From assembly GCA_965644265.1 (NCBI GenBank), contig OZ286465.1, positions 8,556,001-8,620,000 on the forward strand: a DNA stretch of 64,000 nt, read 5' to 3'. Positions within the stretch are counted from its first letter, which is position 1; every line of letters starts with the position of its first letter. The DNA is from Glycera tridactyla (Eukaryota). Below the pieces are notes generated by a model, which made no database searches, was not told where the DNA came from, and saw only the letters and a list, made by a program, of their open reading frames with translations. Of this stretch, positions 23,201 to 60,870 are shown piece by piece. The position numbers and the translations under genes are program-made.

Positions 23201-26200
23201 TTCACTGTAATCTACAAGGGACATACACTACTATGTCATGTCAAAGTTTTCACAGCTTTCACCTTGCATGTCCACGTTATGAGTAATACCAACTCTCTGT
23301 TGGGCTCCTCCCCACGATTGGAAAATGAGGAGAAAGTGCTTTAGGTCTGTATATGAAATCTTTGTATCTCTTTTAGTTCCATGATGGCAATCTACTTGGG
23401 GTGATGGGCACAGATGTTCCTCTCAAAGAGTTAACCAAACTGACACCAAATTACAAGGTAAGGCAATGCCCCTGATTTTCACTTGTCGTAGGAATTTCAT
23501 TGCAGTATCACAAATGTCCACTAGTCTAGATATACCAGAGATACACTAATGCCTCCTGATCTTTTTTCTGATACTGGTATATGTTCATCACATGACGAAT
23601 ATGAACGAAAAAGTGTGCTGCCATGTACATCATATGAATGGAATAAATCTCAAAAGGAGTGTTTTATCATGTGTTATTTCATANNNNNNNNNNNNNNNNN
23701 NNNNNNNNNNNNNNNNNNNNNNNNNNNNNNNNNNNNNNNNNNNNNNNNNNNNNNNNNNNNNNNNNNNNNNNNNNNNNNNNNNNNNNNNNNNNNNNNNNNN
23801 NNNNNNNNNNNNNNNNNNNNNNNNNATAATTTGCATCAGAGTGATTATATGGATTGATATGTTTCAATTGTGATTTCTCTTATTGGATCTTTATTCACAC
23901 AGCTCGGAGTGAATGGTTACGCATTTGCCATCACCAACAATGGATATGTCCTATTCCATCCTGATTTCAGGCCTACGGTGAGTGAGATATATCTCAGCCA
24001 TGGTTATCTGTATATCAGTTGTTGAAATCATATACACAAAGGCGCAATAACTCTATAGCATGAATGATGTTCACAGGAAGTTGAGCAACTAAATAACCAT
24101 TGTCATCTACAGTGATATTTCAGTAAATGTTCAGCTGATGTTCTCACTAGTCCACACTGGAAATAGTGCTGCGCCCCTCTGACTTCTATAAAGGATGATG
24201 TAATCTTCTCCAATATGTTTCTACTTGTATATGTGCACTCTGGATACGCGAATTATTCACCGTCAAGCGACTTCATATTCCCGTCATATTCCCGTCCATA
24301 GTGCAAGTAGCAGTAATTCTAGAATCCCTCTTATCAAAAGTGTAGTGCCCTTTTTTTTCTCCATATCACAGTCCTCCCTAATGCTTGCTACATAATGTTT
24401 CTGATTTCAGTGCTAATGACTTGCCAGTAATCGACGCTCCTGTTGATTGTACATATTTGTAACTTTTCCAGGAAAAAGATCAGGTGAAGCCAAACTATAA
24501 TAGTGTGGATCTCGCAGAAGTCGAGCTTTGGGAAGAGGCCGTTCAGGTGAGACCAACCTCTTTTCTTTACACAGCCACATTTTCAAGTGAACCAATTCAA
24601 GTTGTCATCAGCGGTACTGAAGTCGATATCTGTATTGAGCTGATGGTGCAGCAGTACTGAGCTTGTTTTGCAGATCTTTAGTTAGCATTGGTCGGAATAG
24701 GGTCAGATGTTGTGGTCCTCGTGCTCCAATGGAGAACTTTCATAGTAGCGTATATGCATATACATTTATCTAACACTGAATGTTACGGGGAAAGAGGCGT
24801 ATTTCTGTAGTATCTCTCGATCTCTCAAGTTTGTACGTATGGGTTGATGGATGGATGGATGTTGTGCGTGGGTTTGCGTGCATTCATTCATGCATGTAAG
24901 GTTTTTAATGTCTGATGTCGGGTTACAATATATCATTGATCAGTCTTTGCCCATTTGGCTATGATATCCAGTATAGTCGAATCCATCTACAAAGACCACC
25001 CTCGGTTGTATAAAAAAGTGGCCTTGTGAATAGGTGACCTTTGGACAGAGGTCATTTACTGTAGAACATATTCTCATATTCACGGTTCAAGATGGCCTTT
25101 GTAGACAGGTGGTCCTCTTATGGAGATGGTGTGTGAGATATAAGTTTGCACATGTTCATGCCTGTTACTGTGAAATATGGATATCTTGTCTGATCCATCT
25201 CATGCCATTATCTGATTCACAAGTAGTACCCGTGAGTGGCCGATGCTTTTTCTATCTGACCGTGTCTTTCATAATCAGGCAGTTGTTGATAATGGTGATG
25301 TGCTGTTGAATTTTCCATTGCAATATGTGAATAGGAATTTTCAAACTCTATGTTTCGAATCGACCCCGGTTTGAGAGGGTGGCTGGGTGGGTGGCTGGGT
25401 GGGTTAATGATGGTTTCTGACTAATAACTCAAAAGGTTTCAGGGCTAGCCTTTTAAAATTTGGCGTACAGACTTCCCTAGGATCTGGTGAGACCCCTATC
25501 GATTTTGAGGTGGCCATATTGAATTTCAAGGTCACTGAGTGCAAAAAGGTGAAAACGGTTTCCGACCCATAACCCAGAAAGTCTCAGGGCCAGCCTTTTC
25601 AAACTTGGTGTACAGACTCCCCTAGAGTCTGGTAAGACTTCCATCGATTTTGCGTCGGCCATATTGAATTTCGAGGTCAGTGAGTGCAAAAAGGTCAAAA
25701 CAGTTTCTGACTAATGACTCGAAAAGTTTCAGGGCTAGCCTTTCCAAACTTGGTCTGCAGACTCTCCTAGGATATGACAAGACACCTGTCTACTGAGTAC
25801 AAAAGGTCACACCAGTTTCCAGACAATAACTTCAAAAGTGTCAGGCTAGCCTTTTCAAACTCGCTGTAAAAACTGTCCTAGGCTAGGACATTTTGGTTGG
25901 TCATCTTAGATCCCAAAGTCATTGAGTGTGAAAAAGTATTAGTTTTGTTCTATTTCACTTCTCTAGTCCAATCTTCCTGTGACAAGCATGCACTCAGCGG
26001 GGCATTCACACTCACTGAGTGCATCTAGTTCTCAACCTAAATGTGTCAGTAATAATTGAAACTTCAGTTTGAGTTGCTACTGTATGCTTCTCTTCTGTTA
26101 TCAAATGAATCACACTTATACATGCCAGGCCAACTACCACCTCGCCTTGTATATCTCAAAATCTACCTTTTTGTATCTTGTCTGTTTCAAAGTTTGAGTG

Positions 26201-32200: not shown

Positions 32201-35200
32201 CAGGGTTTGTGAAAGTGATGTCTGCAGGGGAGAGAACATCTAGCTTTCATTAACCAGGAATACCCCTCATACATAATCCCGTGGGTTGATACATGCCGTT
32301 GAACCTCAAACAAACAAACAAACAATCACCCCAGTGGATGTGGAGACCAGTTACAGATAGTTTTGAGTCCATCTCTCCGTGAATTCAATGTACCTCACCA
32401 GATTTCTCACAGCTGCCTCCCACAGGAACGATACATCCACTACACTTGAGAAGTCCAATCAATGGTTAGCATATACATATGCTTCGTGGATCTCGTGTCT
32501 GAAATATCACTTGAACGTGACATCATATCATACCAGTCATGTGTCTCTATGACACATACTGTTTATTCATTATGTCACTTACTGAAAATCCAGTTAGAGG
32601 AGTAACTTCTGACACGATCGAATTACCTCATGGATATGGTTACCTCACAGTCGTACATACATGCATGTATAAGCACTCAGAACAGTCACAGTCACATCAG
32701 AGCAAGTGCCTATTACATGAAATTGTTTTGTATGACTTTTATCATCTTCTTCAAGTGTACCATTGACACTACTGTAGTAAGTTTTCCATTATCTATGTCT
32801 ATGTTGGTGAGGGCGATGTCCACGAAGACATCATTTTGACTGATCCATGAAGATACTTTTATTTCCTGAAAAGAATGATAATATGCAAAGTATTCATTTT
32901 TCTATTATCCAGTTTAGGGATAGCATTACCTACTGGATATGGCATGAACTATCTGGATGGGCGCACAAGACTTAGACCAGGCACGAGTGAGTAAAGATGC
33001 ATTGTTTATTCTTTCCAAGCACATTTCATCAGAGCAAAGTTGATACCATCTTCAAAGTCTTGCGTTTCTGTTCACCATTAGCGAGGGCATTATGTTGGCA
33101 ATGAGAACAAACAAATGTGTAAAGGTGATAATATGAGACAATTTCACAAACGACATCGATTTCAATTGATATTTTGGGTGTCTACAATTTTCATATGATT
33201 TCACCTTCGATTTGGGGATGTGAGAAATAGTTGAAAATTAGTCTGGCTGAATTAGAAGTCACGTGTACATAAACATTCCCACAGCTGAGAGTCAAACTCA
33301 CCTGGGAATCCCTCTATAGATGCTGGAGCATATTCCCTTCTGCAAGATTCAGTTTACTCTGTTTCTTGGTGTTTGATAAGAGTACTGCAGATATGAGGCA
33401 CCCTCTTGGAGTTGCTTGCATGATAGGTAGTCTGAATTGTAGACAACATGTCCAATGATTGATAAATGTAGTGCCTGTAAAGTTTTCACTTTACTATACA
33501 TTTGTGTGAATACTTCTGTTTATCTCCAGAACTCGATGCCTTCTACTCAAGCCTGGTGTGGCTTGCAGAATGGTGAGTAGTGATTAGGAATTGGACTCAC
33601 AGAAATCCACTTTGTTCCTGTGAGATTAATCACCCAGATGGGACATACATACCAGAATAACGTTATGTCCCATCTGTGCCCTGTGTGCATATCCAATCTG
33701 GGGGATGTCACAGATCAGTTTGCTGTCAGTCATCATCATCAGCATCAATATAGGCACCGGTATCGGCCTTCCAGCATGCCTCCATCACCCTGTTTGCCCC
33801 AACTCTGATATCATAACCATCTTCTACTACGCCTATCAGACCCTAGAAGAAACAATAACGATACTGGCACATCTACCTGATCTGCACATGGAACGATAAC
33901 ATTGTCACTGGATGGCGCTGCTAGTAGATAACTATTCCAATCATAGTCCTATATGATCTGAAGCCTCACCGCTGACTATACACAACAATGGCTCCCATAC
34001 CATTAATGGTGGAATTGTTTGTATCACAGTATAGAAGAAATTCATCGCTGTACATGTATATGAATTAGGTATGAAGGCCTGTGGATGACGGGAAAAGGAA
34101 TGGGCGACGAAACGATGGCTTCATAAATTATAGTGAATTAGTAGTTGAAATCATCAAGTGAATCAATCGAACCNNNNNNNNNNNNNNNNNNNNNNNNNNN
34201 NNNNNNNNNNNNNNNNNNNNNNNNNNNNNNNNNNNNNNNNNNNNNNNNNNNNNNNNNNNNNNNNNNNNNNNNNNNNNNNNNNNNNNNNNNNNNNNNNNNN
34301 NNNNNNNNNNNNNNNNNNNNNNNNNNNNNNNNNNNNNNNNNNNNNNNNNNNNNNNNNNNNNNNNNNNNNNNNNNNNACATTGATGCATACACAAAGTACA
34401 TGGTTGCAGGGATGCTGGAATATAGTTCTGGAGATTTCTCATTAATTTCTATGTACATCAGTCCAATGTGTGATGTTCTGCAGGGACTACTGTAATATGG
34501 ATACGAATGAAACTCGCCAAGATCAGGTGGAAATGCTGGTCAAATACATGGAAATGGCTCAATCTGGAAAACGCGAATTCTTGGAAATGAAATGTAAGTT
34601 GAACAAATCCACCATGATGATAGACTACCTGATTGACTGAACGTATGTCCATAGTCCGAAGCAGGGTGAATTTGATTCAGCCCAGAATCTCCCCTTTTGA
34701 TCCCGAATGTATAGCCAATGAATCATGTTTATGTTGATGGGACTATTTCATGTTGATATGAGCCATGGCTACTGTCTTCTGTATTCGAACCTCAGAAAGT
34801 CCTCCAGCCATACCAGTCTCTGGGATCTCGCAGTATTTGCTTTCTAATGCCGTCCAAAATGTGACAAAGATTTCGGATCATAAGGAGTGTTCTGATAAGC
34901 AATATGGACAATTTGAGATGAATTATTTCGGACATATCCGAATCACGAATGTGCTGTCAGAGTCCCAAATTCATCGTGCCCATGGTGCTAATCATAACAT
35001 CTGAATCTTCCGACATAAAACAACTCAGGTACAAAAATACACTATGTTCACGAAACATTGAGACAATCAAAATTGATTTGTGTTTTCACCGGTTCAGTAC
35101 AAAAAAGTATGATGCTGTTTACAATCTATATGAAGAAATACAAGAATAATGTCCACTTTCTAATGAAAGTGAAGAAGTGATGATGCTGATCAAGTGCGGC

Positions 35201-38200
35201 AGCTGGCAACTTGCTATGGGATGTGTGTACAACTGTTTTGCAGGTGATATTGAGTTGCTGGAGGGGTTACTCTTTGATGCTCAAGCAACTCGTGGTGCGT
35301 TGGCAGCTTGGATGAAGGTCAATCGTGATGGTACCAATAATCACAGCACCTCACGCAAGTAGGTAGCCTCTTGCCATNNNNNNNNNNNNNNNNNNNNNNN
35401 NNNNNNNNNNNNNNNNNNNNNNNNNNNNNNNNNNNNNNNNNNNNNNNNNNNNNNNNNNNNNNNNNNNNNNNNNNNNNNNNNNNNNNNNNNNNNNNNNNNN
35501 NNNNNNNNNNNNNNNNNNNNNNNNNNNNNNNNNNNNNNNNAGACAAGATATCAATTGAATGGAAATTGTGATTGTTTTCAGGAGGCACAGTTAGTTCCAG
35601 CAGTGACAGTATGCATGTATATGTGCGATCATGTGCATGCGTGCAATGAGCATTATAAATCTAGATACTATGCATACGATTGTCAGCGACCCTACCCACC
35701 ATGCACTGTAAAGCAGCAGTATCTATTTACATGTGTCCACACCCGCCAGTGTTTGAATCAGTGCATTTTATTGTGCCATGTTGTTATAGTAATTAAGTTT
35801 GCCATGACTAGCTGTGTGTTCCGCTGACTTGAGGACCGATGGTTGAAAATGTGGTTGGACTATAACCATTCACGGGCAAGTGGTAACAAGCACACAGCTG
35901 AAGATGACAATCCTGATCACGAGTTTTCGTTTGGCTGAAGTTGTGCACATGGTAGTGTCTTGCAAACTGTATACCTGCATATTCTTTGTCTTCCTACACG
36001 AGCTCCCTGGTACGGGCTCACCATTAGATCGTCTCACTGGTGTTGCATTTCTAGATCGGATAATCTGGTGCATTTTTCAGAAATTTCAGTTGAAAACTCT
36101 AGTTGGAATTCCAAAGAGCTGACATAGAACCAAATGCCCGGAACTCAAATATTCACAGATATGACTTCTATGTCTGGTAAGGGTGATCGTTATGAATAAT
36201 TTTGACGATGATGATGAAGGCAGTATTGATTGTCCACAGTTTTGCGGACACAAAAACGCCTTATCCGCTTGACTACTAGACATGGTAAAAGAAATTGGAA
36301 TCCCTCTACAGCATCCTGAAGATGCACTTTGTGAACTCAATGTATAAAACACAAGAGAATCTCAAGAGGTCTAAGTAAAGAATAATGTTCCTTGCTGATT
36401 GCATGGTCATTACACTATAACACCCGTGAACCACAGATTCCACGGAGGTGAAGAAATATCAAACCACACAAGCATTTCTGAAGATCAGAGCCAGCTATCT
36501 CGGTCAAAAATAGCTTGATTTCGGAAGTATCGAGAAGTATGAATTTTTACCTGTTTGTGCATCGAGTATCTCTTAGTTTTCAATCCTATGTTTTTGGACA
36601 AATATTTCCATATTCCCATGTACACCATCATAGTAGCCTCAGTATGCAATGATTTCAAGTCTGTGGGTGCATAATACTGCATTCCTTTCATACTCAGCAA
36701 ATAGTGGAGTTGCGGATCAATCATATTGTGGAGTTTTGGATTAGTTGAGACTTTTCCGTCTATCACTTGGGTAGCAGATATGCTGGATAGGCAAGGGTTG
36801 AATGTTGATGTGGTCCTCATCTCAATATTTCATAGTGTTTGTCTGTCTCTGTTCTGCTGATTCATTCTGTCTTGTTTTCCCTTCATGCAGACAGTATAGT
36901 ATTACCATATGTTATCTATGCCATGAAGCCTGTATTTGATGCGACCTAGGATGCAGTCCTCACTCCAGAAATTGGGTATTTCAAGACTAATGCTTCAAAA
37001 CTTCTGTCATGTCCATAGCATATTTTGAATAATATTCCCAACCATGTCAACAGACCTGAGATATCTAGTGTGCCATTCCATCAAAGTGAAAAGTGGGTAG
37101 AATGTGTTTGAAGTGAAATAAGAGATCAGATGACATGTTTGATTCCTACATAGTACATGGTCTTGACCATGGCAGTTCTTCGAGCAGTTTCAACATCTCA
37201 CTCTGAAATGACGTCCATATGTATTCTGTTGATCAAATTACTTTGATCCTTTCCAGAATTCAAAGCCAACATATGAATTATAGTATCATACATACTGAAT
37301 AGGTTTGTCGAGAGGATGCACAATTATTTTTCCGTTGATTTCACTCGTTCAAGATCACCCTGTGTTGAGAGTACTTGTGAATTACTGGAACGGTTTCATG
37401 GTTCGGATGGGATGACTTTATTTCATGTTGGATGATGCAAGACTGGGAGGATCAGTGATAACAAGAGAAGGCCAAATTGCATGGGTACTGGGTGTTGGGT
37501 GTTTGGTTGAAGGTCAGCTGTAGCTTCTCCTTGCATTACTGAGCATGACATTACATATTGAACACAGTTGCATGATGTGGATAAGGTCATTCTCTGGTGG
37601 AATATTAAACAGTTGAATGTGTCAAATGAAAAGCTATCTTATCAGCACAACCTACAAAAGGCAGATGAGCTATCATATCCTGGTAACCTTCAATAGCAAT
37701 CACATCCATTCTTTATTTGGTTGCACCAGTTGTTTTTTTTTCGTTTCCTTGTGTTCGCCATTTTCAGACAACAAATTTTATTATGCGCGATCTTGAATTT
37801 CACTCACTCGGGGACAAAATATGTGCAAGATAGTAGCATTCATCTTACGGGTCTTTACAAAATCTGTGGGGTCATGTTCCAGCAGTTGGTTACATCACAT
37901 GGTTTATTTTAATATTTCCTTGCCTGATTTTGCACAGTAATTGCACACTGCACTCGTGCACACTGGACAAGCATCTCAGGTAATGTTCCATTCCTCACTA
38001 CTAGCGATCGCTGACTGCGTTTAGTGGTGACCATCAGCCAGACATCTTCTTGGTAACCATGGCTTTATGTTCAATCTTTTGCATATCCATGGAAACCAGT
38101 ACAGTGGATTTCAATTTTGTATGTCTACAAACCTAACCCATGAGACAGGCGTAGTTTAACAAGCAATGCACCTGATGATCCTTGTGGTCTCAAAAAATAG

Positions 38201-41200
38201 ATGGGCATCCATTAATTCTTTCCTGAATAGATTTTCATGTTATAACTTGAACCTCTTGGAAGCTAATTGAAACCCATGAACCTGACAGTTCTCTGCTCTT
38301 GATGTATATCTGGTTGCTGAATTCGACCAACATTGTCATCAAGCGTCAATGGGATGAGGATACAGCTCCAGCGATGGCTACTATGTCGCTAACTAGGCTA
38401 CTGGCTATAAGAGAAGCAAACAACTCAAAATTGATAGGTTGTGATCACACATGACATCAGAATAATTGTGAGAATGACCTTCCCCAAAGCATGAACGTTA
38501 AGAAGCATATGTTGTTCATCTGTACTTGAGTCCTCCTCGATATAACATCATTCCCGAAATGCGGAAGATGGAAAAACTCTGTATACTTAGATGTGATCAA
38601 TTTCCCTTATGCCAAATTTAAATGATATAGTGATCCTGTCTNNNNNNNNNNNNNNNNNNNNNNNNNNNNNNNNNNNNNNNNNNNNNNNNNNNNNNNNNNN
38701 NNNNNNNNNNNNNNNNNNNNNNNNNNNNNNNNNNNNNNNNNNNNNNNNNNNNNNNNNNNNNNNNNNNNNNNNNNNNNNNNNNNNNNNNNNNNNNNNNNNN
38801 NNNNNNNNNNNNNNNNNNNNNNNNNNNNNNNNNNNNNNNNNNNNNNNTGTTTTGGTGTGTGACTCAAACAAGTTGTTGAATGAAAAACATTCCCATCTGA
38901 GGACCATACTCAGACATCTGTTTTCTGTTGGAGTCATTGAGTAAATCATACTCAATGTCTATATTCACAAGAAACATTACCACCCACTCTGAGGACAAAA
39001 ATGGATCCGACATTCTGACATTTCATGAGTTATTTTTCACGAGAGCACTCAGTGGAATAAGTTGGATGCCCATAGGACTTGTACAGAGCCAACCAAGTTG
39101 ACTCCATGTACCATTGTTCGACAGTAAATATGTACCTAACAAGCACTGCTTCTACTAATATGAGTTGCATTACTTTCTGTCTCATCAATGTCTCTTGTAT
39201 TAATCCTATTTTCTGTTCTTTATTTTATCCTCTTATACATGATACTAACACTACTAACCTTGAGCAGATTGGATATGTCATCTGATGCTAGTCCTCATAT
39301 GTAATGCTTCTATCATGGGGTAGTCTCCTTGCGAGATTTATAAACATTGCTTCATGGCAGAGCAATAGTGGAGCCTTTTAATCATACATCAAGAGCTAAC
39401 TTGTAAATGTTAGCGATTTGATGGATCTGTTTTCTCGAAATCCCTATGCAGTTGTATGGAAGTTTTGAATTCTCTCAGAAAAAAAGGTATCATTCAATTC
39501 ATGAGACTTGAATGTATCACGTTAGATCAAACCCTATTAGACTCGATATGGACGGAGACTCGGTTTGAAAACACTGATATGATATAATGTTGCAATGTAA
39601 CAAATGAATATCTGTGGTTGTAGATCAGAACAGGTTCGCCCGCTTCACTAAATGGCTTTAACAAATCTGTGTACCCAAAATTGCAGTGGCAGCTAACGTT
39701 CGATAATGTTTTATACCATTTTGTAAAGGAAATGTGGTTCCCCTTATTTTTATTTGATACGCTCGAGATAGAAAAAAGTCGAAAGGGGGTTTGGTGAATG
39801 TTTCTCTGTGAATCAAACTGAGCAGCCTTCGGATTGATATTGAAGATAGGAAATGATGAAAATTGTGATGAAAATTGTTACCCGGTGTTATCGAAACAGG
39901 CTTGGACAGTTCTTGTGACAACTTTGGTGATTCTATTGACTAATTGAGATATAAATATAAGAATGATCAACTGCCTTGCATCTGCTTTCAATTCTGTAGT
40001 CAGTAATTACTAATAATGTAGTTTGCTATTGTAAACATATAATTTCTGGTAGGTATTTGCAGATATATTAACAGATATTAGATGTTTATCAGCTATGGCA
40101 TGTTGACTCCTCAGACGGTCCCCCATGTGTCAATATATCTCGAACGAGCATGCTTTGAATCAGATGACGTGCGATGTGATGATACTGCTTTTGTCATAAG
40201 TATACATGGTATGGAAAAGGACACAATGGCAGTAGAAGAGAAGTGTTTGGACATATTGCGGTGCTCTGTACATCGCTAAGTTAGGTCATTGAATGACTTG
40301 CAGCAGATAATACGTATATATGTTATTTGGTTTCAGAGTATTTGAACAATTGACACTTGTACCATTTGTTTATTTGCGGCGGTTGCGGCGATATTTCCTA
40401 TCATTGAATGAGATGTTTACACCATTTGTAGTCCTCGGGATTAGGCCTGGCCTCAGCTATTCTTGCCTCGGGAATTTCTATTTTCAGATAACTTAGATCA
40501 GTTTATTAGGGAGTCAATACTCCTTTGGTATCAAGCAGTATTGTTTTGTCCAAACTTGACACAGTACACATGTCAAAAGTGTGTCTGAACAAGTAATGGC
40601 TGTATTATGCAGCTCATCCATTGTGAATAATTGTCAACTGGTGCTATTAACATTACAGTATGTGAATTACTCACTCATTATCAGTCTGTCCCATCTAATG
40701 CCCACAAAATGCGATTTATTTTGTCACACTCAAATCAAAAACTGCATTTTGCAATGTTATTGAATCTACAATTGAGGGCCGAAGCACTGGGGATGAATTC
40801 ATGTGTGTATGATTTGGTACTTTTCTGGATACTGTAGACAATTGACTGGTATGCTATGTAGAACTAGACTGGAATAGTGATGATCTGGTGCATTCGGGGC
40901 CATAGTTGGGTTGTTTGTGAGAAGGGAGCGGTGGAGAAATCTGATTTTGAATAAAAAGCACTTCTCGTTCTATAATGGTTCAAGATCTCATCGGAACATC
41001 GAGATACCAGCAAGACAGATATGCAGACGTCTTTCATCTTCGCAGCTTTCTCCCGGTCCGCCTAGCTCCACCTCAAGCAACCCGACCCTGGCCCTTTTTG
41101 TATGTTTGTTGCATGAGGCATGCCTGACATGATTGTAAGAGCCAGAACTCATTCCGCTGATCAACTGCTTTCAATCATCAACGTTGTTACTCAATGTATC

Positions 41201-47000: not shown

Positions 47001-50000
47001 AGCACCTAGCATCAATCAAGGACATTCAAGATAAAAGCACATTTCATTCTCAGCCAAATGAAGGCTGTTATATATTAGTAGAGGAAGTAGCAGAGACACT
47101 CACCAGGTGGTGGATAGTCAAGGAGTATTCCAAAACCGTGCCTTCTTTAATGAGTTCACTGCCAAATGCAATGGTTCTTGGTCACGAGGTCCTCTTGATG
47201 GGAAGAATCATTTGACAGCAGTACTCTCACCATATGATAGGATAATTCGGCGGCCTTGGTCCCTGTACGAAGTGGTTCCTGTTTTCAAGATGTGGGTAGC
47301 CTCGGCCACATCGTGGCTAATTGTCTCAATGTTGTGTGAGTGTTGGAGGGGCCCAGTGTCGTTTTGGATGTGCTGCATGAAAGATTTCCTTGAATAATTT
47401 CAGGACAAAACTCAAGTACTTATATTATTGGTGTTGATTTCTGTTTGAATTACTGTGCTTTGTTTGGTTCAGGATCATTGGTATCAGATCTTAATGTTTG
47501 CTTTCGGACATTCAAGCAGTTGAACATGACACCAAGAGGTTCATCAATCATCTGTTAGACCTCTAATGGTCAATCCTTTCTGAACATATAGTACAAGAGT
47601 CGTTCCTCGGGTGAATGCATTCACCCTATGCATAATGCTGAGACTCGTAGCTGATCTGAATTTTGTTTGATCCATGAAATGTATATTTTATTCATTTAGA
47701 TTGGCAGATTTTTCGGTGATATTGATGCCACCTTGATGCGAAAACTGATCCAGTACGAGGACTCTGAGGATTCAGGGAATATCAAAGGTGTCTTCAAACG
47801 GTGAGTGTCATGGATATTTGCCGGCACCTGCTGATTGTAGCAAAATATCATTTCTTTAAACCTGCTCCACTGAAATTTCAGCTTGTATTTTTGAAGTCTG
47901 GTGTCTTGAAATTGATTGATATTCCAAACAATTCACGAAATAATGTTTCCGGAATGATGGCGACAGCTTTGAGGATACTATTTAACTGCGAAACTTTGGG
48001 ACTTTGGGATGTGCATATGTCCTCTAGTCACTCGGGAATGTTCAGTTCAAAGTCACTTCAGTCCATGGTCAGCCAATGAGATGACTGAAATTCCTTTGTT
48101 TGGATATACAATCTGGTTTGATTGTCATTGACTCCTCTTTCACCACTTTACCAGTTTGTTTGGGGCAGTGAAAATGTCTACCTGTGGATCATGTGTGTAA
48201 CCAAGATTCATATATTTTTCCAGAGTTCAGATGTATGACTATCAAGGCATGTGCGAGATATGGGTACGCGGGATATCTGGCGCCAACTCACTCTTCATTG
48301 ATGTAAGTATAAAAATTGATATATAGATAGACATATGGGCAGAGGGGTAAGAGAGTGGGAGCAGGGCTGTACTTATTGTAGTCACTCAGCCATTTCTCTT
48401 CTTATGTGAATGCTGAGATTGAGATGCTTTTCCTGTGAAATCAGAAAACTTCCTTACGTATTTCTGTATCTGAATCTCAGTGAATTCTATGACATCATTC
48501 GGATTTGGATGAAATGAGATGTGGTATTCACTTTTTGCCTTCACTCTGTGATGGATCCATGAGCAATTTTTTAAAATTTGAAATTGGATTTGAGGGATGG
48601 TGGATCGATTATTATGTATAGTAATGGGTGAGATGGCATTGTATCCCTGATGAGAAATGAACATTCAGTCTCATCGCGTTGTTTGGCTCGGAAGCTAGTG
48701 AGGGCCAAGCTAATCAGATTGCATTCAGATTGCATCTCATCATTTCTTCAGTCTATTACCTGTCAGGCAGTATTCTGTGGTATCCATGTGGCTTCAATAG
48801 GTAATGCAATGATTCTGTTTTGTGTGATCTGTTTGTCTTGTAGAAGTAAAATTCATTTTTGTTCTATTGCAGCCATTGCGCAAGTTATTCTCTTCTCTAT
48901 CATGGTTGATCCAAGAAGTTGCATTGTGAGTATAATTTTCAGAACAATCTATTTTTATAAAAAGAATCATGACAGGGGGTATTGGTGGTCAGCCCGAGAG
49001 AGTCAATGAGCTGTGGGAGTTTGATTTCAGATGATTCATGATTCATCCTTGGACCAGCTCTTCTTTCTGGCATTTGGAAATCTTGCAGCTGTCAAAAATA
49101 GTTTTCAAGTTTCCGGGTACTCCATAATTTGTCCTGTTCCATTGAAGGAGATGATATGCCTTGTTACCATCCACAATCGGCTCAATTATCTCACTTGAAT
49201 CATCTATCTTTTCAATCTTCTGGTAACTGATGAGGCTGAAAGAGCTCTCGAACTTGGAATCTAGGTAAAGAAATCATTTGTCTCTGTCATATGGATTGCC
49301 TTCAGGAGCATGCAACCTAGGTTATGGTGGGTGTGCCATTACTAGTGGCAGTTACAAACAAAACCACTGTCTCAAGTATCACCGCTGCCAGCAATTAATC
49401 TACTTTGCTTTGTCTTACAATGACTGCCTGTGTGCGTGCGTGTGTGTGGGGGGGGGGGGGGGATGGATATGTGTGTGTTTGCGTGTGCGTGTGTTTGAGG
49501 AATACTGCTCAATAATTGACAGCAATTTTGGGGAAATATGAAAGGAATGCACTTTAAGTCTACATATATTTTCTGATGTATGATATGCATGGTTTTTTTT
49601 CGCTTGCCAGATTTTTGGTTCACTTCAACTTGATGAGTTGGTGGAATGGAGAATATACAACAGTCCTAGGTATGTATGTGCTTATTATCCTGCATCCAAT
49701 AATGAGACCAATCACATTGTCATTTCTCCCAATGAAACATTTGCTGAATCCTCGCTTTCAGTTTCTTGAGATTGATTGTTATTCTGTTCTTTATTTTTGA
49801 TGGCAAGCTACACAATGCTGTCTATAATACCAGTATGATCATAACTGTCCTGATTTCGAAAGACTAAAAATGATGTATACAAGAAGTCATCACAGAGTGG
49901 CAGAGGAATGAATATGTGGTGGCATTTTTCACATGTTTTTGTTCCCTCTATCCCCAAAATAATATTGAACCAATCTCACTGTGTCTCACTTTGTTCAAAA

Positions 50001-53000: not shown

Positions 53001-56000
53001 ATATTTCAAATCTTCACATCTGAATTGACAACCTATGTTCATTCTTATTCAAGCTCATATCTGGACTGAATACATTTATTCAATGAGTATTGTGAATAAC
53101 TTAAAACTATCCTGGAGAATGAATGTAGTATAAAGTGTCTTTTTTATACGTCCGATGCATACTATATCTCCATTCCTGTGGTTACTTTGATGTGTATCAA
53201 TCTGCAGTTTATGTTGTAGTTGATTGCGTGTTGTACCACATGTTGTCACATTCTGTGCATCTTCTGTCTGCCATATCACCTGGTGGATGAACATCAATTT
53301 ACAGGCAACTCTCACAGTCATCAATCTGTCTTCGCATCTCATATATTCTCTGATGATTCTTCACACATTGTTTCCATACTCACCTCACTGTGAATCATGT
53401 CTCTTCTGGTATTGTCTTACTCGAATCAGCTGATTGAAGATGTTATTCTTGGTTACTTTCTAATGTTGTTGCTTTTTGTGATGATACATCATCTGTCTGT
53501 TTCCTTCTCATGGACAAGGTCTGGTTGAGGAGCCCCTGTCTCTATCATCTCATGTCACTGTGCAGCTGCATTCTCATCTTTCTCGTGTCAAGCGTCCAGA
53601 TGGCAAGCCTTCAATTCAGTTGCATGTCCATTTTCGACAATTATCTACTGCGATATCTATCCTTTTTTTCTATCATATTTTGAGAAACAAGAAATGTTGA
53701 TGGGCCCCGGACTCGAAGCAGTGACATTTTTAATGCATCTGTACAGTTCACCAAAGATTAAGATTTGCTCCTGCCCTACATTTAGATTGATCATTTTTAC
53801 ACCCGTATTTTATTGATTTTGTTATCATTCATTGAAGGAGGTCACACACCAAGCATATCCTTCCAATTGAATACCAACACATGACTAAATATATAGAAAA
53901 AGTGATGGATAATAGTGGAGATGGAGGAGAAATAAGCAAAGTGAGGTCATACACATATACAAATGATGACATGACGGGGAAATCCGGGTACTTCATACCA
54001 ACTGATGGAAGTCATTAACATTTTCATGTTAGATACAGGTCGTATCTCACAACATTATAGCTATTTGAATCAAAATGAAATAAATATCAAATTGAGATAG
54101 TGAAGGTGATAGTGAGGCTGAATATGCGAAGGATGTAAAATGTTCCACTCTATCTGACTGGGAGATGAATACTTGTCGATAAGTTCAAGCAGGCTCTTAT
54201 TAGTTGAATGTTATTTAAAGCCCAACTACTATCAATCCAGGATGTATGCAACAGGGCAGGGGAATTCACTTGCTCGCACGTGAGACAACATAAACTATGT
54301 GTTCTTTATGAATTAAGAGCAGTTCAAAGAAATATACTTCTTCGAAGCGCTTAAATTTATCTATAATACCAAGTGACATCGCTTCACTTTTGGATCTATT
54401 GAGAGTATGTCTGTTATGTCATACACTGTTCTCCAATTTCAACATATCCGATACTAAGATATTATCAGTAGTTGATCGCTTGAAACATATTTGACGAACC
54501 ATCGGCAAACATATGGACTATGAAGTGCTCCAAGGATCCTACCAGGTCATTCATGTACAGAGGAAAGAAGGAACAGCCAAGTATGTGACTCTGGACCACT
54601 TTATTCAATATAATCAATCACAATGAGTACGATACTACTGGGAGGTGATCTATTGATCCTTCAAGCCTGTCAGGCTCAGGAACACCTCCCCACTACACAT
54701 GCCCTCATCCGCTGCTCTGTATATTGTCACGTCGAAATTGATGATGACGTGAAAATCGTGTAATGCTCCCTGATATCTGGCTGGCGATCGGAGAGGATGT
54801 GCTCCCTGACAGCGACTATGTGTAACCTGCCCTGAGGGTTTACCGAAGGTTGGAGAACAGTGATTGTAGGATTCACCTCAGCATCATATATCAAGAGCTT
54901 CATAACAGGGACCAAAATAAAACCTAGTACACAACATGGCAAACTGGTAATTAGAGATTGTACCACAAAGAAGCAAGATCCTTTCACTGATAACAACGAA
55001 ATCCTACCCTGATCTAACTGTCATTTCATCACCCATATCCACAAGGAAGTACCTTCTCGCTTGATGATTCTGTCTACGAGACATTAATTTGACATTGTTG
55101 ATGACGTTGGACAGGGAGGTATTATCTAATATGGGTGTTGATAACAAGTGTAGGCCTACAGCGGCAGCATCTACACTTACAAAGGAATAAGTGTCATTAC
55201 CAAAGTGGGACTGACCTAATCGATTCCCAGCATATATTCTTTCAAGCATACTTTCTTTCAACATTAGTCTAATATCTTACAGGACACACTTTTAATATTT
55301 TGAACATCTCAGTGAAATGTGCTCAATTGGACCTTTGAAGTAATGAGAGGGTCATGTCAAACGCCATCCAAATGGCAGCAGATGTATGATAATGTCATCT
55401 AGATATGAGGGTGGGTAGAGCTGAGGCGGGCCTTTGTTGTATGTAGCGCCATGGACAGCTCTCTGCAGCAGATGTATGATAATGTCATCTAAATATGAGT
55501 CTAGGTAGAGCTGAGGTGGGCCTGTGTTGTATGAAGCGCCATGGACAGCTCTCTACAGCAGAAGTATGATAATGTCATCTAAATATGAGGCTAGGTAGAG
55601 CTGAGGTGGGCCTGTGTTGTATGTAGTGCCATGGACAGCTCTCTGCAGCAGATGTATGATAATGTCATCTAAATATGAGGCTAGGTAGAGCTGAGGTGGG
55701 CCTTTGTTGTATGTAGCGCCATGAACAGCTCTCTGCAGCAGATGTATGATAATGTCATCTAAATATGAGGCTAGGTAGAGCTGGGGTGGGCCTGTGTTGT
55801 ATGTAGTGCCATGGACAGCTCTCTGCAGCAGATGTATGATAATGTCATCTAAATATGAGGCTAGGTAGAGCTGAGGTGGGCCTTTGTTGTATGTAGCGCC
55901 ATGAACAGCTCTCTGCAGCAGATCAGTTAGCATTTGTGGTCTAGTTCATGCTTGCCATGCCAAGCTAAGCATGCAGTTAAGCCTGCAAGATGGCGCTCAG

Positions 56001-58878
56001 CGCCTTGGTCCATCCAAAAACATGTCCGGATATCAGTATATAGAGCACTAGATATTACAGAACCGATCAAATGATTAACCAAGGGCGTTTCTGTATGCTT
56101 CTGCAATATTTTTCCCCTATGGTGTGCGTGTGATGAAAGGAAAATAAGGTGATACTCTCCTGAAGTATACGAGATGGGATTCCTTTCTAGATTGTGAATG
56201 TGCTTCCATTTCTGAAACGTGATGGTCTGATTTTCGGGAAATGTATCAGGAATTCTGTTTGACCCTTGTGATTGGTGATGATTTTGAATGTAATCTCTCT
56301 TGGTATTCAGTATAGTGCGCATGTTGACTTCCTTTTAGGGCAATTTGGATCTTGTTGAATTTGCTATACTTGGGATTTTCAGGCTTATGGTAGTGATGGT
56401 ATGGAGCTAGGAAGGTACAAATTTGCAAAACGGTCACCTGCATCCCACCTTTCCTCGTTACTTTGGTCACTAGTAGTATCAGCGTGACCTTCTGGCTCTC
56501 AGCCTCTGTTCCATCCCATGGTCCGCGATCATCAAAATTTTATTACCTCGATAAGCTTTCTGTTCACACATAATCCATGTGGTTTCCATGTTCGTTGTCA
56601 CGCACATGAACAATATGCCGAATTCACAAGTCTTTTGGATATTTATGTCGATGATCAGCTCATATGTGACATTCTGACTTCCGATGACTTTGGCTCAGTG
56701 CCAAGCCAGGTTTGAATGCACTCTAATGTAAGTTGTTCATACCTGGAATGACATGTTCTTGATCATCAAAATCATTCAGGAGTGGGGTTTTGAGATCAGC
56801 AAACCTGAGAAACATCACGGTAACGACTTTCATCAAGCTTGGCACCTTGAAATATTCTCCTCAATCCATGTGAAAAACTAGTCATCTTACGTAGGTCAGA
56901 TGATTGTTTTCCATTGTGTGGTACTGCCATATGGGACCTCTCGACAATAGAAGGCATCAACTGATGGTTGTGAAGTGGCGGGATCTTCAAAACATAGTAG
57001 TAGCATGCTCCCTCCTCACTGGAGCATTAGTGATCAGTAGAGAAATGACCACATATTGTATAATGGTCTGCAGTCTCACTTAGCATCTCATAAAACTTGA
57101 ATACTGAGCCAGCACCTTCTCACAAGTTGCACTAGTGTAACTAACTTTAGTATGCGAGATTAACTTTTCAAATAGAAATGGTAAGTCACACGCACATAGA
57201 GGAAACTACATGGTGAACTTAAATCCCTGGAGTATATGGTTCTTATATGAGGCCCCATTCCATTTTATTGTGGATATCACAATATTCTACGTGCCATACA
57301 CATCCAATCACAGCATGTTCCATACAGAATAAACTCAACTAGATGGGAAATGTCTCATTGAATAGACTACTCCCTCCCTATCCATCAGGTTGACTGTGTC
57401 TGTACTATGCTTCCATATCTCACTCAGTATCTTGGTCATGATTCACCTAACCACATGTTTTGCACCAATCAGGGGAGAATAATGAGACTATCATCCGATA
57501 CATTGAAGACATGGAGGAAAATGTCAATCTGCCGCATGCACAGGAGGAAGGCCACATCCCAATGGGACAAGCACACACTGAGGAAACACTACAAGAAACA
57601 GAAGAAGAACCATTTTGGCCAGACTTCACCAGTCTACTGGACTTTGCAAATTCTGCACAAGTGCTAGATTGGTTCCAAGAATACCGTCAGATGAAGGGTC
57701 TTGGCCAATCAGATGAGGACATCAAAAGGTGGTTCCACAGCTTGCGTCGTATATATGGCCCACAAATGGTTGGTTATGCAAAATGTTCAAAGGAGTACAA
57801 CCTTTACACTACTGGAAATCAACAGCTCCCATTTCATGGCACTGACATAAGCTGCCCGGATTCTCCATGCCAGAAGTAAGTATTCACCAGAGCAGTGTGT
57901 GACAGTGAGTCAGAGATCTCCCACCCCCTGTAACATCGATGTAGTTCTGAGAGGGCATTGATTGCTATGCTTTGGTCTGCCAATTATGCATCTTGGACAA
58001 AGTGGTTGATGAATTGTTGGATCGTTCCTAGTCTGGCCTCCTTCGGTGTTGGTTTTCTGTAGGCATCTGTTCGATATTGCCAGATATATTCCACCTGCTG
58101 TTTGTCTGCCCTTTGTCTCTGCATCCTTGGGTGAACTATGGTCACTCTTGTCTTCCTAAAGGGATTTCATGCATGTCTGCCCTTAAGCGTGAATTATTGC
58201 CACAAACCTATTATTATTTCACCATCCATACGAATACAAGGAGAGGGAAGCCACTTATACGGCATTATTTTCATTCACATCGATGAACTTTTTTTTTCCA
58301 TTTGCCACATTCTCTATTATTTTGCTTATAGATGACTTGGCTGCTGTGACATATTTGTTGCCTCATTAGCAGTGCATCATTCTCGTGCCTGTTCGTTTCA
58401 CGTCAGTTCTTCATTTGCACTTATCTACAAACTTGAATGAAGTCAGCATTAATTTCTGCCTACCGTATAGCAGGGAGTACCGATGTACGTGTCCTTCCAG
58501 CTATTGCCACCTTTGTCATTTGTACTTCACAGGCAATGAGAGTTTTACTTCTGCACCTCCTGTTTATGAGCCAGCCGCTGAATCAAATGAGCCCCAGGAT
58601 TACTGGGTCCCGGACTTAGACGTCCTTGCAGAACTTGCTGAAAAAACTGATGATCCTGACCAGTTGCGGCGCTGGCTAAATGAGTGGAGAGAAATGAGCT
58701 CATCTGGGAGTTCGAATGAAGAAATGATCTTATGGTATGAAGATATAAAGAAGCTTTATGGACCACGGGTCGTTGGATATGAGGGATGCATAAGGGAATT
58801 TGCTAGTTTTATCAGTGATCCAACTAGTCCTCCCCAAAATGGTGTCATCGACAAGGGTTGCATATCAGACTGCATTAG
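414..58878 (+). CDS. CACNA2D3: Voltage-dependent calcium channel subunit alpha-2/delta (alpha2delta-3/4-like), multi-exon, partial at both ends
   Basis: Hand-spliced exons give one ORF with hallmark motifs: [131 protein letters not shown]. All introns GT-AG with matching phases. Family is certain; the paralog label is by resemblance only. Confidence 0.95.
1200..3200 (-). mobile_element. Possible highly decayed LINE RT remnant
   Basis: Minus-strand [14 protein letters not shown] near 1490-1530 resembles GV.QG..L.P.LF; remainder unrecognisable, bounds approximate. Confidence 0.25.
5204..5233 (+). CDS. Candidate 30-nt symmetric microexon [10 protein letters not shown]
   Basis: ctatag acceptor after a T-rich tract, gtaagc donor, stop-free in phase 0 inside a phase-0 intron; no homology support. 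Confidence 0.3.
8046..8925. repeat. Minisatellite, 42-bp unit x ~21
   Basis: Unit atggcatggatggctgtcaaacatgctgctgaatgataatat, near-perfect copies. Confidence 0.98.
9611..9635. repeat. (GT)n microsatellite next to an assembly gap
   Basis: Direct reading. Confidence 0.95.
10561..10809 (+). CDS. Candidate cassette exon, 83 aa acidic/Pro-rich (KYLDPHLL...[13 protein letters not shown]), phase 0-0
   Basis: Strong acceptor tatttccttgttattttcag and donor acg/gtaagc; 249 nt, stop-free, same phase as the flanking exons; two N-glycosylation sequons (NIS, NET). Confidence 0.7.
13278..13293 (-). promoter_or_regulatory. CTCF-like motif GCCACTAGATGGCGTC
   Basis: Close match to the CTCF core consensus CCACYAGRKGGCR; motif match only. 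Confidence 0.35.
15862..16743 (+). mobile_element. Non-LTR retrotransposon RT fragment, RTE/RTEX-like, inactivated
   Basis: [26 protein letters not shown] (FADD-type motif altered), [26 protein letters not shown]; in-frame TAA at 16401-16403; bounded by N-gaps on both sides. Confidence 0.9.
20229..20282. repeat. (CA)n microsatellite next to an assembly gap
   Basis: Direct reading. Confidence 0.95.
22655..22711 (+). CDS. CACNA2D3: alpha2delta exon: [19 protein letters not shown]
   Basis: ctttctag / gtgagt; matches the LMTTVAMPVF motif. Confidence 0.93.
23377..23457 (+). CDS. CACNA2D3: alpha2delta exon: [27 protein letters not shown]
   Basis: tttttag / gtaagg; Cache-domain LLGVxGTDVP motif. 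Confidence 0.95.
23903..23977 (+). CDS. CACNA2D3: alpha2delta exon: [25 protein letters not shown]
   Basis: cacacag / gtgagt; highly conserved [13 protein letters not shown] motif. Confidence 0.97.
24472..24546 (+). CDS. CACNA2D3: alpha2delta exon: [25 protein letters not shown]
   Basis: ttttccag / gtgaga; [13 protein letters not shown] motif of the alpha2delta-3/4 group. Confidence 0.93.
25360..26029 (+). mobile_element. Non-autonomous Helitron/HINE-like element with internal ~145-bp tandem repeats
   Basis: GGGT-rich microsatellite (~25376-25410), degenerate ~145-bp units (agggc[t/c]agcc at 25441, 25586, 25731), 10-bp inverted repeat ATGCACTCAG/CTGAGTGCAT (25988-26024) followed directly by CTAG-T; 5' end approximate. 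Confidence 0.55.
27459..28177. repeat. Minisatellite, 55-bp unit x ~13
   Basis: Unit cacactaccatcgtttgcatctcacacctccatatttcgcttcattgacagatgc. Confidence 0.97.
29143..29181 (+). CDS. CACNA2D3: 39-nt symmetric exon [13 protein letters not shown]
   Basis: tgtttacag / gtaagt; phase 0-0, stop-free; not needed for frame and not recognisable in vertebrate paralogs. Confidence 0.65.
29964..30035 (+). CDS. CACNA2D3: alpha2delta exon: [24 protein letters not shown]
   Basis: cctattgcag / gtgggt; matches LR..MI.RET. Confidence 0.92.
30311..31631. repeat. Minisatellite, 35-bp unit x ~38
   Basis: Unit gcagc[t/c]atagtatgctcattgtatgaatgcatcat. Confidence 0.98.
31725..31786 (+). CDS. CACNA2D3: alpha2delta exon: [20 protein letters not shown](S)
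   Basis: tctctcacag / gtatgt; phase 0-2; KRV...YYYT.I.GTPFS motif. Confidence 0.93.
32913..32986 (+). CDS. CACNA2D3: alpha2delta exon: [24 protein letters not shown]
   Basis: ttatccag / gtgagt; phase 2-1. Confidence 0.92.
33530..33572 (+). CDS. CACNA2D3: alpha2delta exon: (K)[13 protein letters not shown](W)
   Basis: tatctccag / gtgagt; phase 1-2; ends LAEW. Confidence 0.88.
34484..34593 (+). CDS. CACNA2D3: alpha2delta exon: [36 protein letters not shown]
   Basis: ttctgcag / gtaagt; phase 2-1; W.YCN motif. Confidence 0.9.
35244..35358 (+). CDS. CACNA2D3: alpha2delta exon: (C)[37 protein letters not shown]
   Basis: ttttgcag / gtaggt; phase 1-2; CD.EL...LLFDA motif. Confidence 0.92.
39950..40850 (+). 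mobile_element. Possible decayed L2/CR1-type RT remnant
   Basis: ASAFNSV (AFD.V-like) followed by [12 protein letters not shown] (YADDT-like) in the expected order. Confidence 0.25.
42786..42866 (+). CDS. CACNA2D3: alpha2delta exon: [26 protein letters not shown](P)
   Basis: ttattccag / gtaagt; phase 2-2; GV..AF.GTR.GL.R-like motif. Confidence 0.9.
43725..43825 (+). CDS. CACNA2D3: alpha2delta exon: [33 protein letters not shown]
   Basis: tttttttccag / gtaagt; phase 2-1; YYRRAVE motif. Confidence 0.93.
43956..44035. repeat. (GA)n microsatellite, ~40 units
   Basis: Direct reading. Confidence 0.97.
45051..45133. repeat. Perfect 39-bp tandem duplication
   Basis: acagagtgatgatcagtcacctctcagaatccacatgga x2. 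Confidence 0.9.
45872..46083 (+). CDS. CACNA2D3: alpha2delta exon: [22 protein letters not shown]...[15 protein letters not shown]...[16 protein letters not shown]
   Basis: ttgttttcag (second in-frame AG 6 nt downstream) / gtaagc; phase 1-0. Confidence 0.92.
46320..46590. repeat. Degenerate (CCA/CAT)n low-complexity tract
   Basis: caccaccaccaccatcaccaccaccaccactactaccacc and decayed flank, intronic. Confidence 0.8.
46655..46717 (+). CDS. CACNA2D3: alpha2delta exon: [21 protein letters not shown]
   Basis: ctttttccag / gtaggt; CYLIDNNGF motif. Confidence 0.96.
47700..47800 (+). CDS. CACNA2D3: alpha2delta exon: [33 protein letters not shown](R)
   Basis: ttcatttag / gtgagt; phase 0-2; G.FFG.ID..LM..L motif. 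Confidence 0.93.
48224..48302 (+). CDS. CACNA2D3: alpha2delta exon: [26 protein letters not shown]
   Basis: tttttccag / gtaagt; phase 2-0; YDYQ.MC motif. Confidence 0.94.
48873..48925 (+). CDS. CACNA2D3: alpha2delta exon: [17 protein letters not shown](L)
   Basis: tctattgcag / gtgagt; phase 0-2; corresponds to P...FL...KW...EL.L. Confidence 0.88.
49611..49669 (+). CDS. CACNA2D3: alpha2delta exon: [19 protein letters not shown](G), end of alpha2
   Basis: cgcttgccag / gtatgt; phase 2-1; matches the alpha2delta-3-type FLVEFNLCSWW. Confidence 0.92.
52150..52900 (-). mobile_element. Decayed non-LTR retrotransposon RT remnant
   Basis: Minus-strand YAVILETKL and [21 protein letters not shown] resemble RT motifs (IL..RL; GVRQGCPLSP.LFN); many stops and frameshifts. 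Confidence 0.45.
54650..56500 (-). mobile_element. Decayed RTE-like RT remnant interrupted by the 90-bp minisatellite
   Basis: Collinear minus-strand fragments: [14 protein letters not shown]...[26 protein letters not shown]...QGRL, in the order expected for RTE RT. Confidence 0.4.
55375..55923. repeat. Minisatellite, 90-bp unit x ~6
   Basis: Unit start recurs every 90 nt (55375, 55465, ... 55915); 30-aa periodicity in the minus-strand ORF. Confidence 0.97.
57473..57875 (+). CDS. CACNA2D3: alpha2/delta junction exon, variant A (GENNETII...FWPDF...[15 protein letters not shown]...[10 protein letters not shown]), phase 1-2
   Basis: caatcag acceptor, gtaagt donor, 403 nt stop-free; 3' part has the C-x2-E-[YF]...C..C-x-[KR] pattern of the delta N-terminal exon. 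Confidence 0.85.
58533..58878 (+). CDS. CACNA2D3: alpha2/delta junction exon, variant B (GNESFTS...YWVPD...[15 protein letters not shown]...KGCISDCIR), phase 1-2
   Basis: tacttcacag acceptor, gttagt donor, 346 nt stop-free; paralogous to variant A (16/43 identities, ungapped core). Confidence 0.85.
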
Positions 58879-60199
58879 GTTAGTATATATATATGGATGT
58901 ATACATATATACTTGGTGTTAACCGAAAATATATTGGTTTTCATAACAAGAAGGGTGTTCTTATTCAGTGTGATTTGTAGAATATGTCCATGTCAGCCTA
59001 CAATGGAACATTGCATGAAGTTCCTTGAATGCCCACTAAGTCACATTGTCCTATTTCCCTGGTGGTATCCCTCTAGAGGCAGTAATCTCCCTGATATGAC
59101 TGAATCAAGTGATTCATTGAAGATCGGATCAAATTTTTTGAAAGGCCTTTTCCAGGAATAGAGTTGTCAATGTCGCCTCTGGTGCATATCACTGACCATG
59201 AAAGACCAGTATTTTAATCTAATCTCTGATTCTTTTATGCTTACACATATGACTCTTTCTATCGAGCTTGGTCTTGCAGTCATCTTCATCATTGCAATTA
59301 CTCTGCTACACTTTTCGTACTATGCAGAGGTGCAGTGAGTCTAGCTGGAATTTATTCTGGATATTCATTCAGAATTTATTAGATCGTTAGATTGTTGCAG
59401 TACAAGTTTGTATACCTCGACTAACCTGTATGGAAACAACCAGGTACCCGCCCAGAATTTCTCGTCATTGCAATTCAAGGGCTAGAATCAATTACTCAGA
59501 TATTAGTGATGACAATGTCAATTCAATGGATGCATCATCAGATGATGTATGCAATGGTCAGTTCAGCAATCAGCAATCCAACTTCACGACTCGGACTTCG
59601 TCTTTGTTTTAATGCATGAAAGAGGTTCCTATGCAGTATCTATGGGACGTTTACACATATGCGGTTGTGAGAGGAGCCTGGGTGGCGGTTGCTAATAATA
59701 TGGAACTGTTCCTGCCAAACATCGAGCTGCTGCAGCTGATAAGCTGCCTCATTAACTCTGCAGCCAGACTCGCTGCCTCAAGGTTCTTGAGAGACTCCAA
59801 ATACTTGTGTCAGTTGTATTAACTGCCTCTCTGCTGCATCAATGCCATCATGTTGCAGCCTCGGCATCTGATCGCTATTGCCCCCAATGCCTAAGAGAAC
59901 TCAGCCAGATTGCAGGCCTATACTGGACTTGCGGCCCAGTCCTGATGCAGTGGTGGTCATTGTGAAACAAGCAATGTCATCGTTGTCATCCTCTTCACTT
60001 CGGTCCTTGTTGCCGCCGCTGCTGTCACCATGATTGTCGTCATAAGAACCGCTACCACCAACACAAGCACCGTCATCTCAAGATGAGTTGCGGTCCATTT
60101 TGCTTGACTCGCCTGATTCGGCAATATAACAGATAGTTGAATACGAATGTGAACATGTTTCTAGATGTAGATGACATGCTGAATGGAGAGGACATGGAC

Positions 60200-60870
60200 A
60201 CTTCAGCTCAGCATCAACTGCCCATTGCCACCTCACAACCATTTCTCAGCGGCACTTGTGGCACCTTGCATGATCTGTGCAGCGACAAGCTCACATCAGC
60301 GTATGTGTAAACGCTCCTGTAATCACTTCCACATATTGAACACTGTGATGATTGATCCAGAATACACAACATATCACAATGAAACTTGAAGAAAACATAT
60401 ATATGCTCGGATAGCATTCTCTGGCAATAGGCTGCTACCTTATCAGCGAGATTGGCCTACTTCTCATCTATCCTCTTTTGATAGTAAAGTTACCTGATAT
60501 TTGATGCAAACCAGAATGAATATACTGTCTATTGAATCACCATTTTGTTCAACATTTTGCCAGATACCCGAGAACTTTGATCAGGCATCAAAGATTATCC
60601 GCATATGCACATCACTTACCTCCAGGATGTGACCACCAAATGAATTTGAAGTGGCATTCATTGAATTTTAATTGTGCATCTTGCTCCTCGCTTGGATATA
60701 GACATATTTTCAAGGATAGACTAGAAATATTATGAATAGTAATTGGCAATATAATCAGTATGAGGTCTCCGAAATGATGGGCCAGTTTTTGAGGTTGGCA
60801 ACCATATGACTTTTCTTCCCCCATGCATGCAGACCATTTTTCGTGAATGCTGTCCTTGATGCTAGATTAA
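60200..60870 (-). mobile_element. Possible decayed L1/Tx1-type RT remnant
   Basis: Minus-strand LKNWPIISETSY resembles LKNWRPISL; frame full of stops. Confidence 0.25.

Follow-up and report, generated by a model that had tools for sequence, protein, structure and literature searches.

In FGFR2, the adjacent homologous exons IIIb and IIIc (148 and 145 nucleotides (nt), both 3n+1 in length) swap part of the extracellular domain; if both are included, or both skipped, the reading frame is lost and nonsense-mediated decay disposes of the product. In the insect exon clusters of Dscam1 (exon 6), 14-3-3 xi and Mhc, docking/selector RNA pairing is found. The alpha2delta subunits, which determine how abundant calcium channels are and also act at synapses independently of the channels, are diversified in vertebrates by four genes and by small cassette exons. 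Among calcium-channel genes, mutually exclusive exon pairs are known from the alpha1 subunits, namely CACNA1C exons 8/8a and 21/22, CaV2 exons 37a/37b and Drosophila cacophony (PMC5059693, PMC11828482, PMC12149502). Described alpha2delta splice variants include regions A, B and C of alpha2delta-1 and exon 23 of alpha2delta-2 (PMC3988960, PMC7351808), with the variants listed in a review being of the cassette type only (PMC7351808). Here, we analyzed a stretch of 64,000 nt from Glycera tridactyla (contig OZ286465.1, positions 8,556,001 to 8,620,000, forward strand; hereafter, the window), in which 2 neighboring paralogous exons, A and B, probably belong to an old cluster of mutually exclusive exons that arose by tandem duplication in an alpha2delta-like gene.

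An earlier note on this stretch had placed the 2 exons after the last alpha2 exon, separated by a 657-nt intron, and sequence reading confirmed their coordinates, borders and spacing (Table 1). Both are stop-free in one frame, starting 2 bases in, over 133 codons in exon A and 114 codons in exon B, against 3 to 16 stops in the other 2 frames. Their shared passage from phase 1 to phase 2 and their 3n+1 lengths hold as described. The paralogy of A and B was supported by BLASTP (E-value 2e-16 over 93 residues, a single comparison), and a hand count over the ungapped core of 43 residues returned the same 16 identities that had been reported; the N-E-T sequon at the start of A, the N-E-S sequon at the start of B and the 3 Cys residues in each were likewise found. 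The donors are ordinary U2-type sites in both exons, that of exon B (gttagt) being the weaker one. Upstream, the 59-nt exon takes in one codon base at the start and passes on one at the end, in agreement with the claim that the preceding exon ends in phase 1, and A and B each take 2. When A is joined to B, the junction reads K, Q and stop, so that translation would end at codon 3, as the earlier note had stated.

Table 1. Positions of the exons, intronic elements and masked stretches discussed in the text, with the loci carrying further exon copies. A slash marks a splice border.
Feature	Sequence	Position	Strand	Description
Upstream exon	window	49611..49669	+	59 nt; borders ag/ and /gtatgt; called constitutive; encodes 19 residues
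Conserved intron 3' end before exon A	window	57460..57472	+	ttgcaccaatcag; aligns with L001
Exon A	window	57473..57875	+	403 nt; phase 1 to phase 2; acceptor caatcag/GG, donor AA/gtaagt
A-B intron	window	57876..58532	+	657 nt
Exon B	window	58533..58878	+	346 nt; phase 1 to phase 2; acceptor ttcacag/GC, donor AG/gttagt
L003	NCBI assembly			3 tandem long copies
L004	ENA metagenome assembly			3 tandem long copies
L005	Logan assembly			2 tandem long copies
L006	ENA metagenome assembly			3 tandem long copies
c0 (short member)	L006	7232-7379		3n+1, 145-148 nt (L006 and L004); runs from phase 1 to phase 2
c0 (short member)	L004	759-903		phase 1 to phase 2; 3n+1
c0 (short member)	L003	about 1717-1867		similar length; phases the same by eye
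Pair 1 blocks	L006	7758-7781 with 9559-9619		bracket long copy 1
Pair 1 blocks	L004	1169-1192 with 2760-2819		bracket long copy 1
Pair 2	L006	11242-11266 with 12047-12067		10-bp core; intron before copy 3
Pair 2	L004	4389-4413 with 5227-5247		10-bp core; intron before copy 3
N stretch	window	9678-9834		
N stretch	window	15537-15861		
N stretch	window	16744-16918		
N stretch	window	20334-20478		
N stretch	window	23684-23825		
N stretch	window	34174-34376		
N stretch	window	35378-35540		
N stretch	window	38642-38847		

Since all members of the cluster are 3n+1 in length and share the same asymmetric phases, a transcript is expected to stay in frame only if it contains exactly one of them. The 59-nt exon that ends at 49669 would supply one codon base to each member, which would in turn hand 2 codon bases to the next exon, beyond the window, whereas the inclusion of 2 members, or of none, would cause a frameshift and an early stop, with the off-frame transcripts presumably being removed by nonsense-mediated decay. 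The choice of A or B would thereby exchange the surface that the alpha2/delta junction presents and leave the Cys scaffold in place. FGFR2 IIIb/IIIc offers the closest likeness, with homologous adjacent exons of 3n+1 length whose joint inclusion or skipping breaks the frame; it differs in consisting of a pair rather than 2 to 4 members, in belonging to another protein family and in being governed by tissue-specific protein regulators. Steric exclusion between A and B can be ruled out, because the 657-nt intron is too long.

The profile of A and B, searched against 1.8 billion representative proteins, yielded 70 matches, the best 2 of which (P0001 and P0002) are located on 2 short contigs, L001 and L002, of one metagenome assembly. 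P0001 on L001 is the orthologue of A and P0002 on L002 the orthologue of B, with 62% amino-acid identity each, and the phylogenetic tree pairs them in the same way; a word-based search of the protein library with exon A returned P0001 only. The reading frame, the acceptor AG, the donor GT and the phases are all kept in L001 and L002, whereas the introns could not be aligned with those of the window except for approximately 13 to 28 nt before the acceptors and approximately 22 nt after the donor of A. Upstream of A, the only intronic stretch that aligns with L001 is the 3' end listed in Table 1, which carries a single difference, a C/T transition; within the A-B intron, conservation with L001 and L002 extends over the first approximately 22 nt and the last approximately 28 nt. 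The ratio of nonsynonymous to synonymous substitution rates (dN/dS, Nei-Gojobori), which the earlier note had expected to lie below 1 for both exons, was 0.18 for A and 0.28 for B, values that are approximate as synonymous sites are near saturation. The low ratios, together with the retention of frame, splice sites and phases while the introns diverged, argue that A and B are functional. By this comparison, both exons are under purifying selection and neither looks like a relic. This bears directly on the possibility that only one exon is used and the other is a pseudo-exon, a decaying leftover of the duplication. Such a history would fit the weaker donor of exon B, the lack of a matching RNA run for either exon and the one contig from sequencing reads that touches A alone (see below), yet it is very improbable given open frames of 114 to 133 codons against the many stops in the other frames, the upkeep of splice sites and phases in a relative with unalignable introns at the dN/dS values above, and the fact that all copies in 4 other loci likewise keep their frame and phases.

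Those 4 loci (L003, L004, L005 and L006; Table 1) were examined by tblastn as contigs bearing more distant matches, so that the search of other genomes for both exons recovered not only the orthologues in L001 and L002 but also tandem clusters. Within each of L003 to L006, the copies lie on a single strand with a spacing of 0.65 to 2.1 kb. All 15 long copies, A and B included, have a best acceptor that takes 2 codon bases, a consensus donor that leaves 2 and a length of 3n+1; together with 2 of 3 copies of a short member, c0, this makes 17 of 17 exon copies checked that run from phase 1 to phase 2 at 3n+1. Every junction tested between neighboring long copies runs into a stop within 2 to 14 codons, with 8 such junctions counted in the relatives. 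In the tree of long copies, the deep branching is without resolution, while well-supported orthologous groups are formed by the copy-1 pair, the copy-2 pair and a copy-3 clade of L003, L004, L005 and L006. Such groups across loci indicate that the duplications are old, and, judged from these loci, the cluster is older and larger than the window alone shows.

Beyond these contigs, the library of 1.8 billion proteins holds approximately 68 clusters of exon-sized open reading frames (ORFs) with the helical module described below. The 34 of these ORFs that were read mostly end in C-x-K followed by a stop, an ending that on its sequence is the donor AA/GTRAGT translated through; the ORFs are prokaryote-style gene calls on single genomic exons. 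Two long matches, P0008 and P0055, were set aside as carriers of the module, being unrelated repeat proteins, and 2 scans of JGI metagenome contigs found no relatives.

In L003, L004 and L006, c0 follows the 59-nt exon, ahead of the first long copy, and consists of the Cys-triad part only, without the helical module. As c0 is also 3n+1 with the same phases, it cannot serve as a constitutive neighbor of the long copies and, on this phase pattern, is a fourth alternative of the cluster; it seems to correspond to the one short exon that vertebrates have at the alpha2/delta boundary. In the window, neither a third long copy nor a short member was found by tblastn, by profile searches of stop-free segments on both strands or by pattern searches, and 2 segments considered as further members (56148-56219 and 60137-60307) were ruled out by a missing donor or a wrong phase. 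The introns of this genome exceed those of the relatives severalfold in length, and further members of the cluster could therefore lie beyond base 64000. The 2 isoforms proposed in the earlier note may thus be an undercount, given that the relatives hold 3 long members and a short one.

Several observations weigh against mutually exclusive use of A and B. Searches for sequencing runs listed no RNA run. X1, the one public run containing the sequence, represented by 20 million letters of contigs, provided one contig of 198 nt that matches 57545-57742 inside exon A with one mismatch and spans no junction, which is compatible with a transcript fragment and with a genome skim alike. No full-length protein with the module, nor any annotated isoform, was found in the protein libraries searched. 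Downstream of the cluster, no next exon could be located up to base 64000 of the window, so that the phase of this exon is known from the relatives only. The window contains 8 N-masked stretches of exon-like size (142 to 325 nt; Table 1), which limit the identification of the gene, and apart from one weak match (E-value 0.004), to which the alpha2delta identity is owed, the other exons tested had no PDB or Pfam match. Finally, the open frame of exon B continues 5' of its acceptor, where AGs corresponding to exon starts at 58471, 58474 and 58501 would join A in frame.

The last of these observations raises the possibility of a single mRNA that contains A as well as B through one of the 3 upstream acceptors of B, yielding 2 helical modules in tandem. 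The AGs have fair pyrimidine tracts, the peptide encoded by the upstream stretch is similar in L002 and the 2 nearest differences are synonymous in that frame. The same AGs, however, are not positionally conserved in L002, whereas the acceptor ttcacag/GC is identical, and the differences, being C/T transitions, are of the kind that a pyrimidine tract would be expected to show. Moreover, the equivalent flank of another copy, at the c1 acceptor, differs by a 1-nt indel between L006 and L004 and is hence not coding; copy 2 of L003 has no in-frame AG upstream of its acceptor at all; and c0 shows that the phase logic extends to the whole cluster. Joint inclusion therefore appears very unlikely, to a degree similar to that of the pseudo-exon. 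The idea that A and B are interchanged rather than co-included draws on purifying selection, the shared asymmetric phases, the recurrence in other loci and the truncation on double inclusion; it is from these that we infer one-at-a-time usage, which might affect cleavage, trafficking or partner binding.

Assignment of the host gene relies on both flanks of the cluster. In the window, the 13 best PDB matches of the exon at 23858-24022 are alpha2delta-1 chains, at residues 480-504 corresponding to a Cache motif (E-value 0.004), while Pfam dCache_1 remained below threshold for this exon. A von Willebrand factor A (VWA) domain with a MIDAS motif did not show up in the window's readable sequence, no test having been aimed at VWA. 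The 59-nt exon has an orthologue of identical length and phases at 5910-5968 of L006 (tblastn against 5911-5961, E-value 1e-5). In L004, L005 and L006, the next exon after the last copy starts with one codon base and encodes SYSIH.V.RTNLMLL, and beyond it come a Cys-rich exon and then a hydrophobic C-terminus (by eye in L006 and L004). The phase-2 next exon postulated in the earlier note was thus encountered in 3 relatives, the window's own exon not having been located before base 64000. We take the phase-2 downstream exon of the relatives to be delta, and the conserved three-Cys segment to be the beginning of delta, in both cases by likeness to the vertebrate protein, in which the delta segment reads C-x(20-25)-DCGNCSR followed by IFHVEKLMNTNL; the downstream exon had no PDB or Pfam sequence match, and neither database confirmed the likeness. 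The link to the vertebrate cleavage site is likewise assumed from position and the Cys pattern, the exons having no match in PDB or Pfam.

On the strength of the Cache exon match and the delta-like downstream exons of the relatives, we accept the alpha2delta reading, noting that the identity of the host gene is less well documented by these tools than the exon cluster. The exons could otherwise belong to a different gene, nested in or following alpha2delta, or the host might not be alpha2delta. The module without a Pfam or PDB match, library matches that are all short exon-sized ORFs and the weakly documented alpha2delta identity would all be in keeping with this. Nevertheless, A and B have no start codon context and carry the phases of internal exons, and the cluster of L006 and L004 is flanked, on the same strand and with matching phases, by the orthologue of the 59-nt exon on one side and by the exons encoding the Cys-rich segment and the hydrophobic tail on the other, which makes either alternative highly improbable.

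Both exons encode a sequon (N-E-T in A, N-E-S in B), a linker, which is acidic in A and shorter in B, the three-helix Trp-rich module and the Cys triad. The general plan of the members, as read from their sequences, appears to be a variable, often glycosylated and acidic linker, a module of approximately 45 residues and the conserved three-Cys segment. Across the alignment of 15 copies, 2 Cys, 2 Trp and single Leu, Gly and Pro residues show no or almost no variation. AlphaFold2, run on exon A with this alignment, predicted 3 helices at residues 51-94 with a predicted local distance difference test (pLDDT) score of approximately 90, an N-terminal linker of low confidence and a disordered Cys tail, which is not surprising in a segment whose packing partner is the remainder of the protein. 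Searches of PDB sequences with A, B, the profile from 15 copies, that of the short member and the neighboring exons returned nothing relevant except for the Cache exon, Pfam gave nothing above threshold for the module, and searches of the protein atlas and, with Foldseek, of the AlphaFold DB produced generic helical matches only.

Next to the splice sites, approximately 20 to 45 nt of intron are conserved, and the rest of the intron is not. In addition, L006 and L004 share 2 pairs of conserved, mutually complementary intronic blocks (Table 1). The core of pair 1 comprises 14 base pairs (bp) between 7767-7780 and 9606-9619 of L006, in the introns before and after long copy 1, and its extended helices reach -36.6 and -33.2 kcal/mol in L006 and L004; for its 21-nt core, the core's own best pairing (-23.1 kcal/mol) was reached by none of 100 shuffles. 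Pairing of these blocks would loop out long copy 1. For pair 2, the extended helices amount to -30.6 and -26.0 kcal/mol (L006 and L004). The block at 7758-7781 of L006 was also considered as a small exon, which was ruled out by a frame-breaking length difference between the 2 species and the lack of a fitting acceptor. Between the A-B intron of the window and the upstream intron, the most favorable pairing (-30.9 kcal/mol) did not rise above background (-29.8 kcal/mol in the shuffled control). Separately, CATTGAAGGAGGTCA at 53830-53845 of the upstream intron can pair with TGGCCTCCTTCGGTG at 58033-58047 of the A-B intron at -28.5 kcal/mol; the motif resembles the duplex of L006 and L004 in reverse order, with an energy not above the shuffle background.

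The elements of pair 1 in L006 and L004 resemble the docking/selector systems of insects in that conserved complementary intronic elements surround a variable exon, with a 14-bp core and -33 to -37 kcal/mol. Unlike in the insect clusters, a single partner was found per element rather than one selector per exon, and none is detectable in the window. We raise, with less than even confidence, the broader scenario of up to 4 either/or exons at the alpha2/delta junction, one short and vertebrate-like and 3 with the Trp-rich module, which might be ancient, widespread in a large group of invertebrates and steered by Dscam-like long-range intronic pairing, with isoforms that might differ in cleavage, channel association or synaptic binding.

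The alpha1 exon pairs resemble A and B as tandemly duplicated exons that diversify one gene of the same channel complex, the difference being that they are located in the pore-forming subunit, whereas A and B are in the auxiliary alpha2delta subunit. The known alpha2delta variants, in turn, are alternative extracellular segments, as are A and B, and have functional consequences; they are small cassette exons within alpha2, whereas here whole exons of 100 to 180 codons are exchanged at the alpha2/delta junction. The earlier note had recognized no such switch among described alpha2delta variants, and full-text literature searches, covering Drosophila and other invertebrate variants, found no description of a mutually exclusive alpha2delta exon cluster. 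The cluster is a known kind of splicing arrangement in a gene where it has not previously been reported. If invertebrates with fewer genes exchange the whole alpha2/delta junction instead, this would provide a natural set of swap variants with which the roles of the junction and of the beginning of delta could be probed. The exchanged part would include an inserted helical module matched by no structure or family library searched, and the conserved intronic duplexes of the 2 relatives, if functional, would add a case of RNA-structure-guided exon choice.

A few other features of the window were observed. The segment at 10495-10827 is long, open, acidic and Pro-rich, and had no Pfam match. Open frames resembling fragments of retrotransposon proteins, broken by an N stretch, are present at 16000-17000. 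On the minus strand, the segment at 55553-55933 has an open frame with 4 tandem copies of a unit of approximately 31 residues and is probably an intronic repeat element. At 8185-8985, there is a minisatellite with units of approximately 42 nt, which in one frame encodes a repeated peptide of 14 letters.

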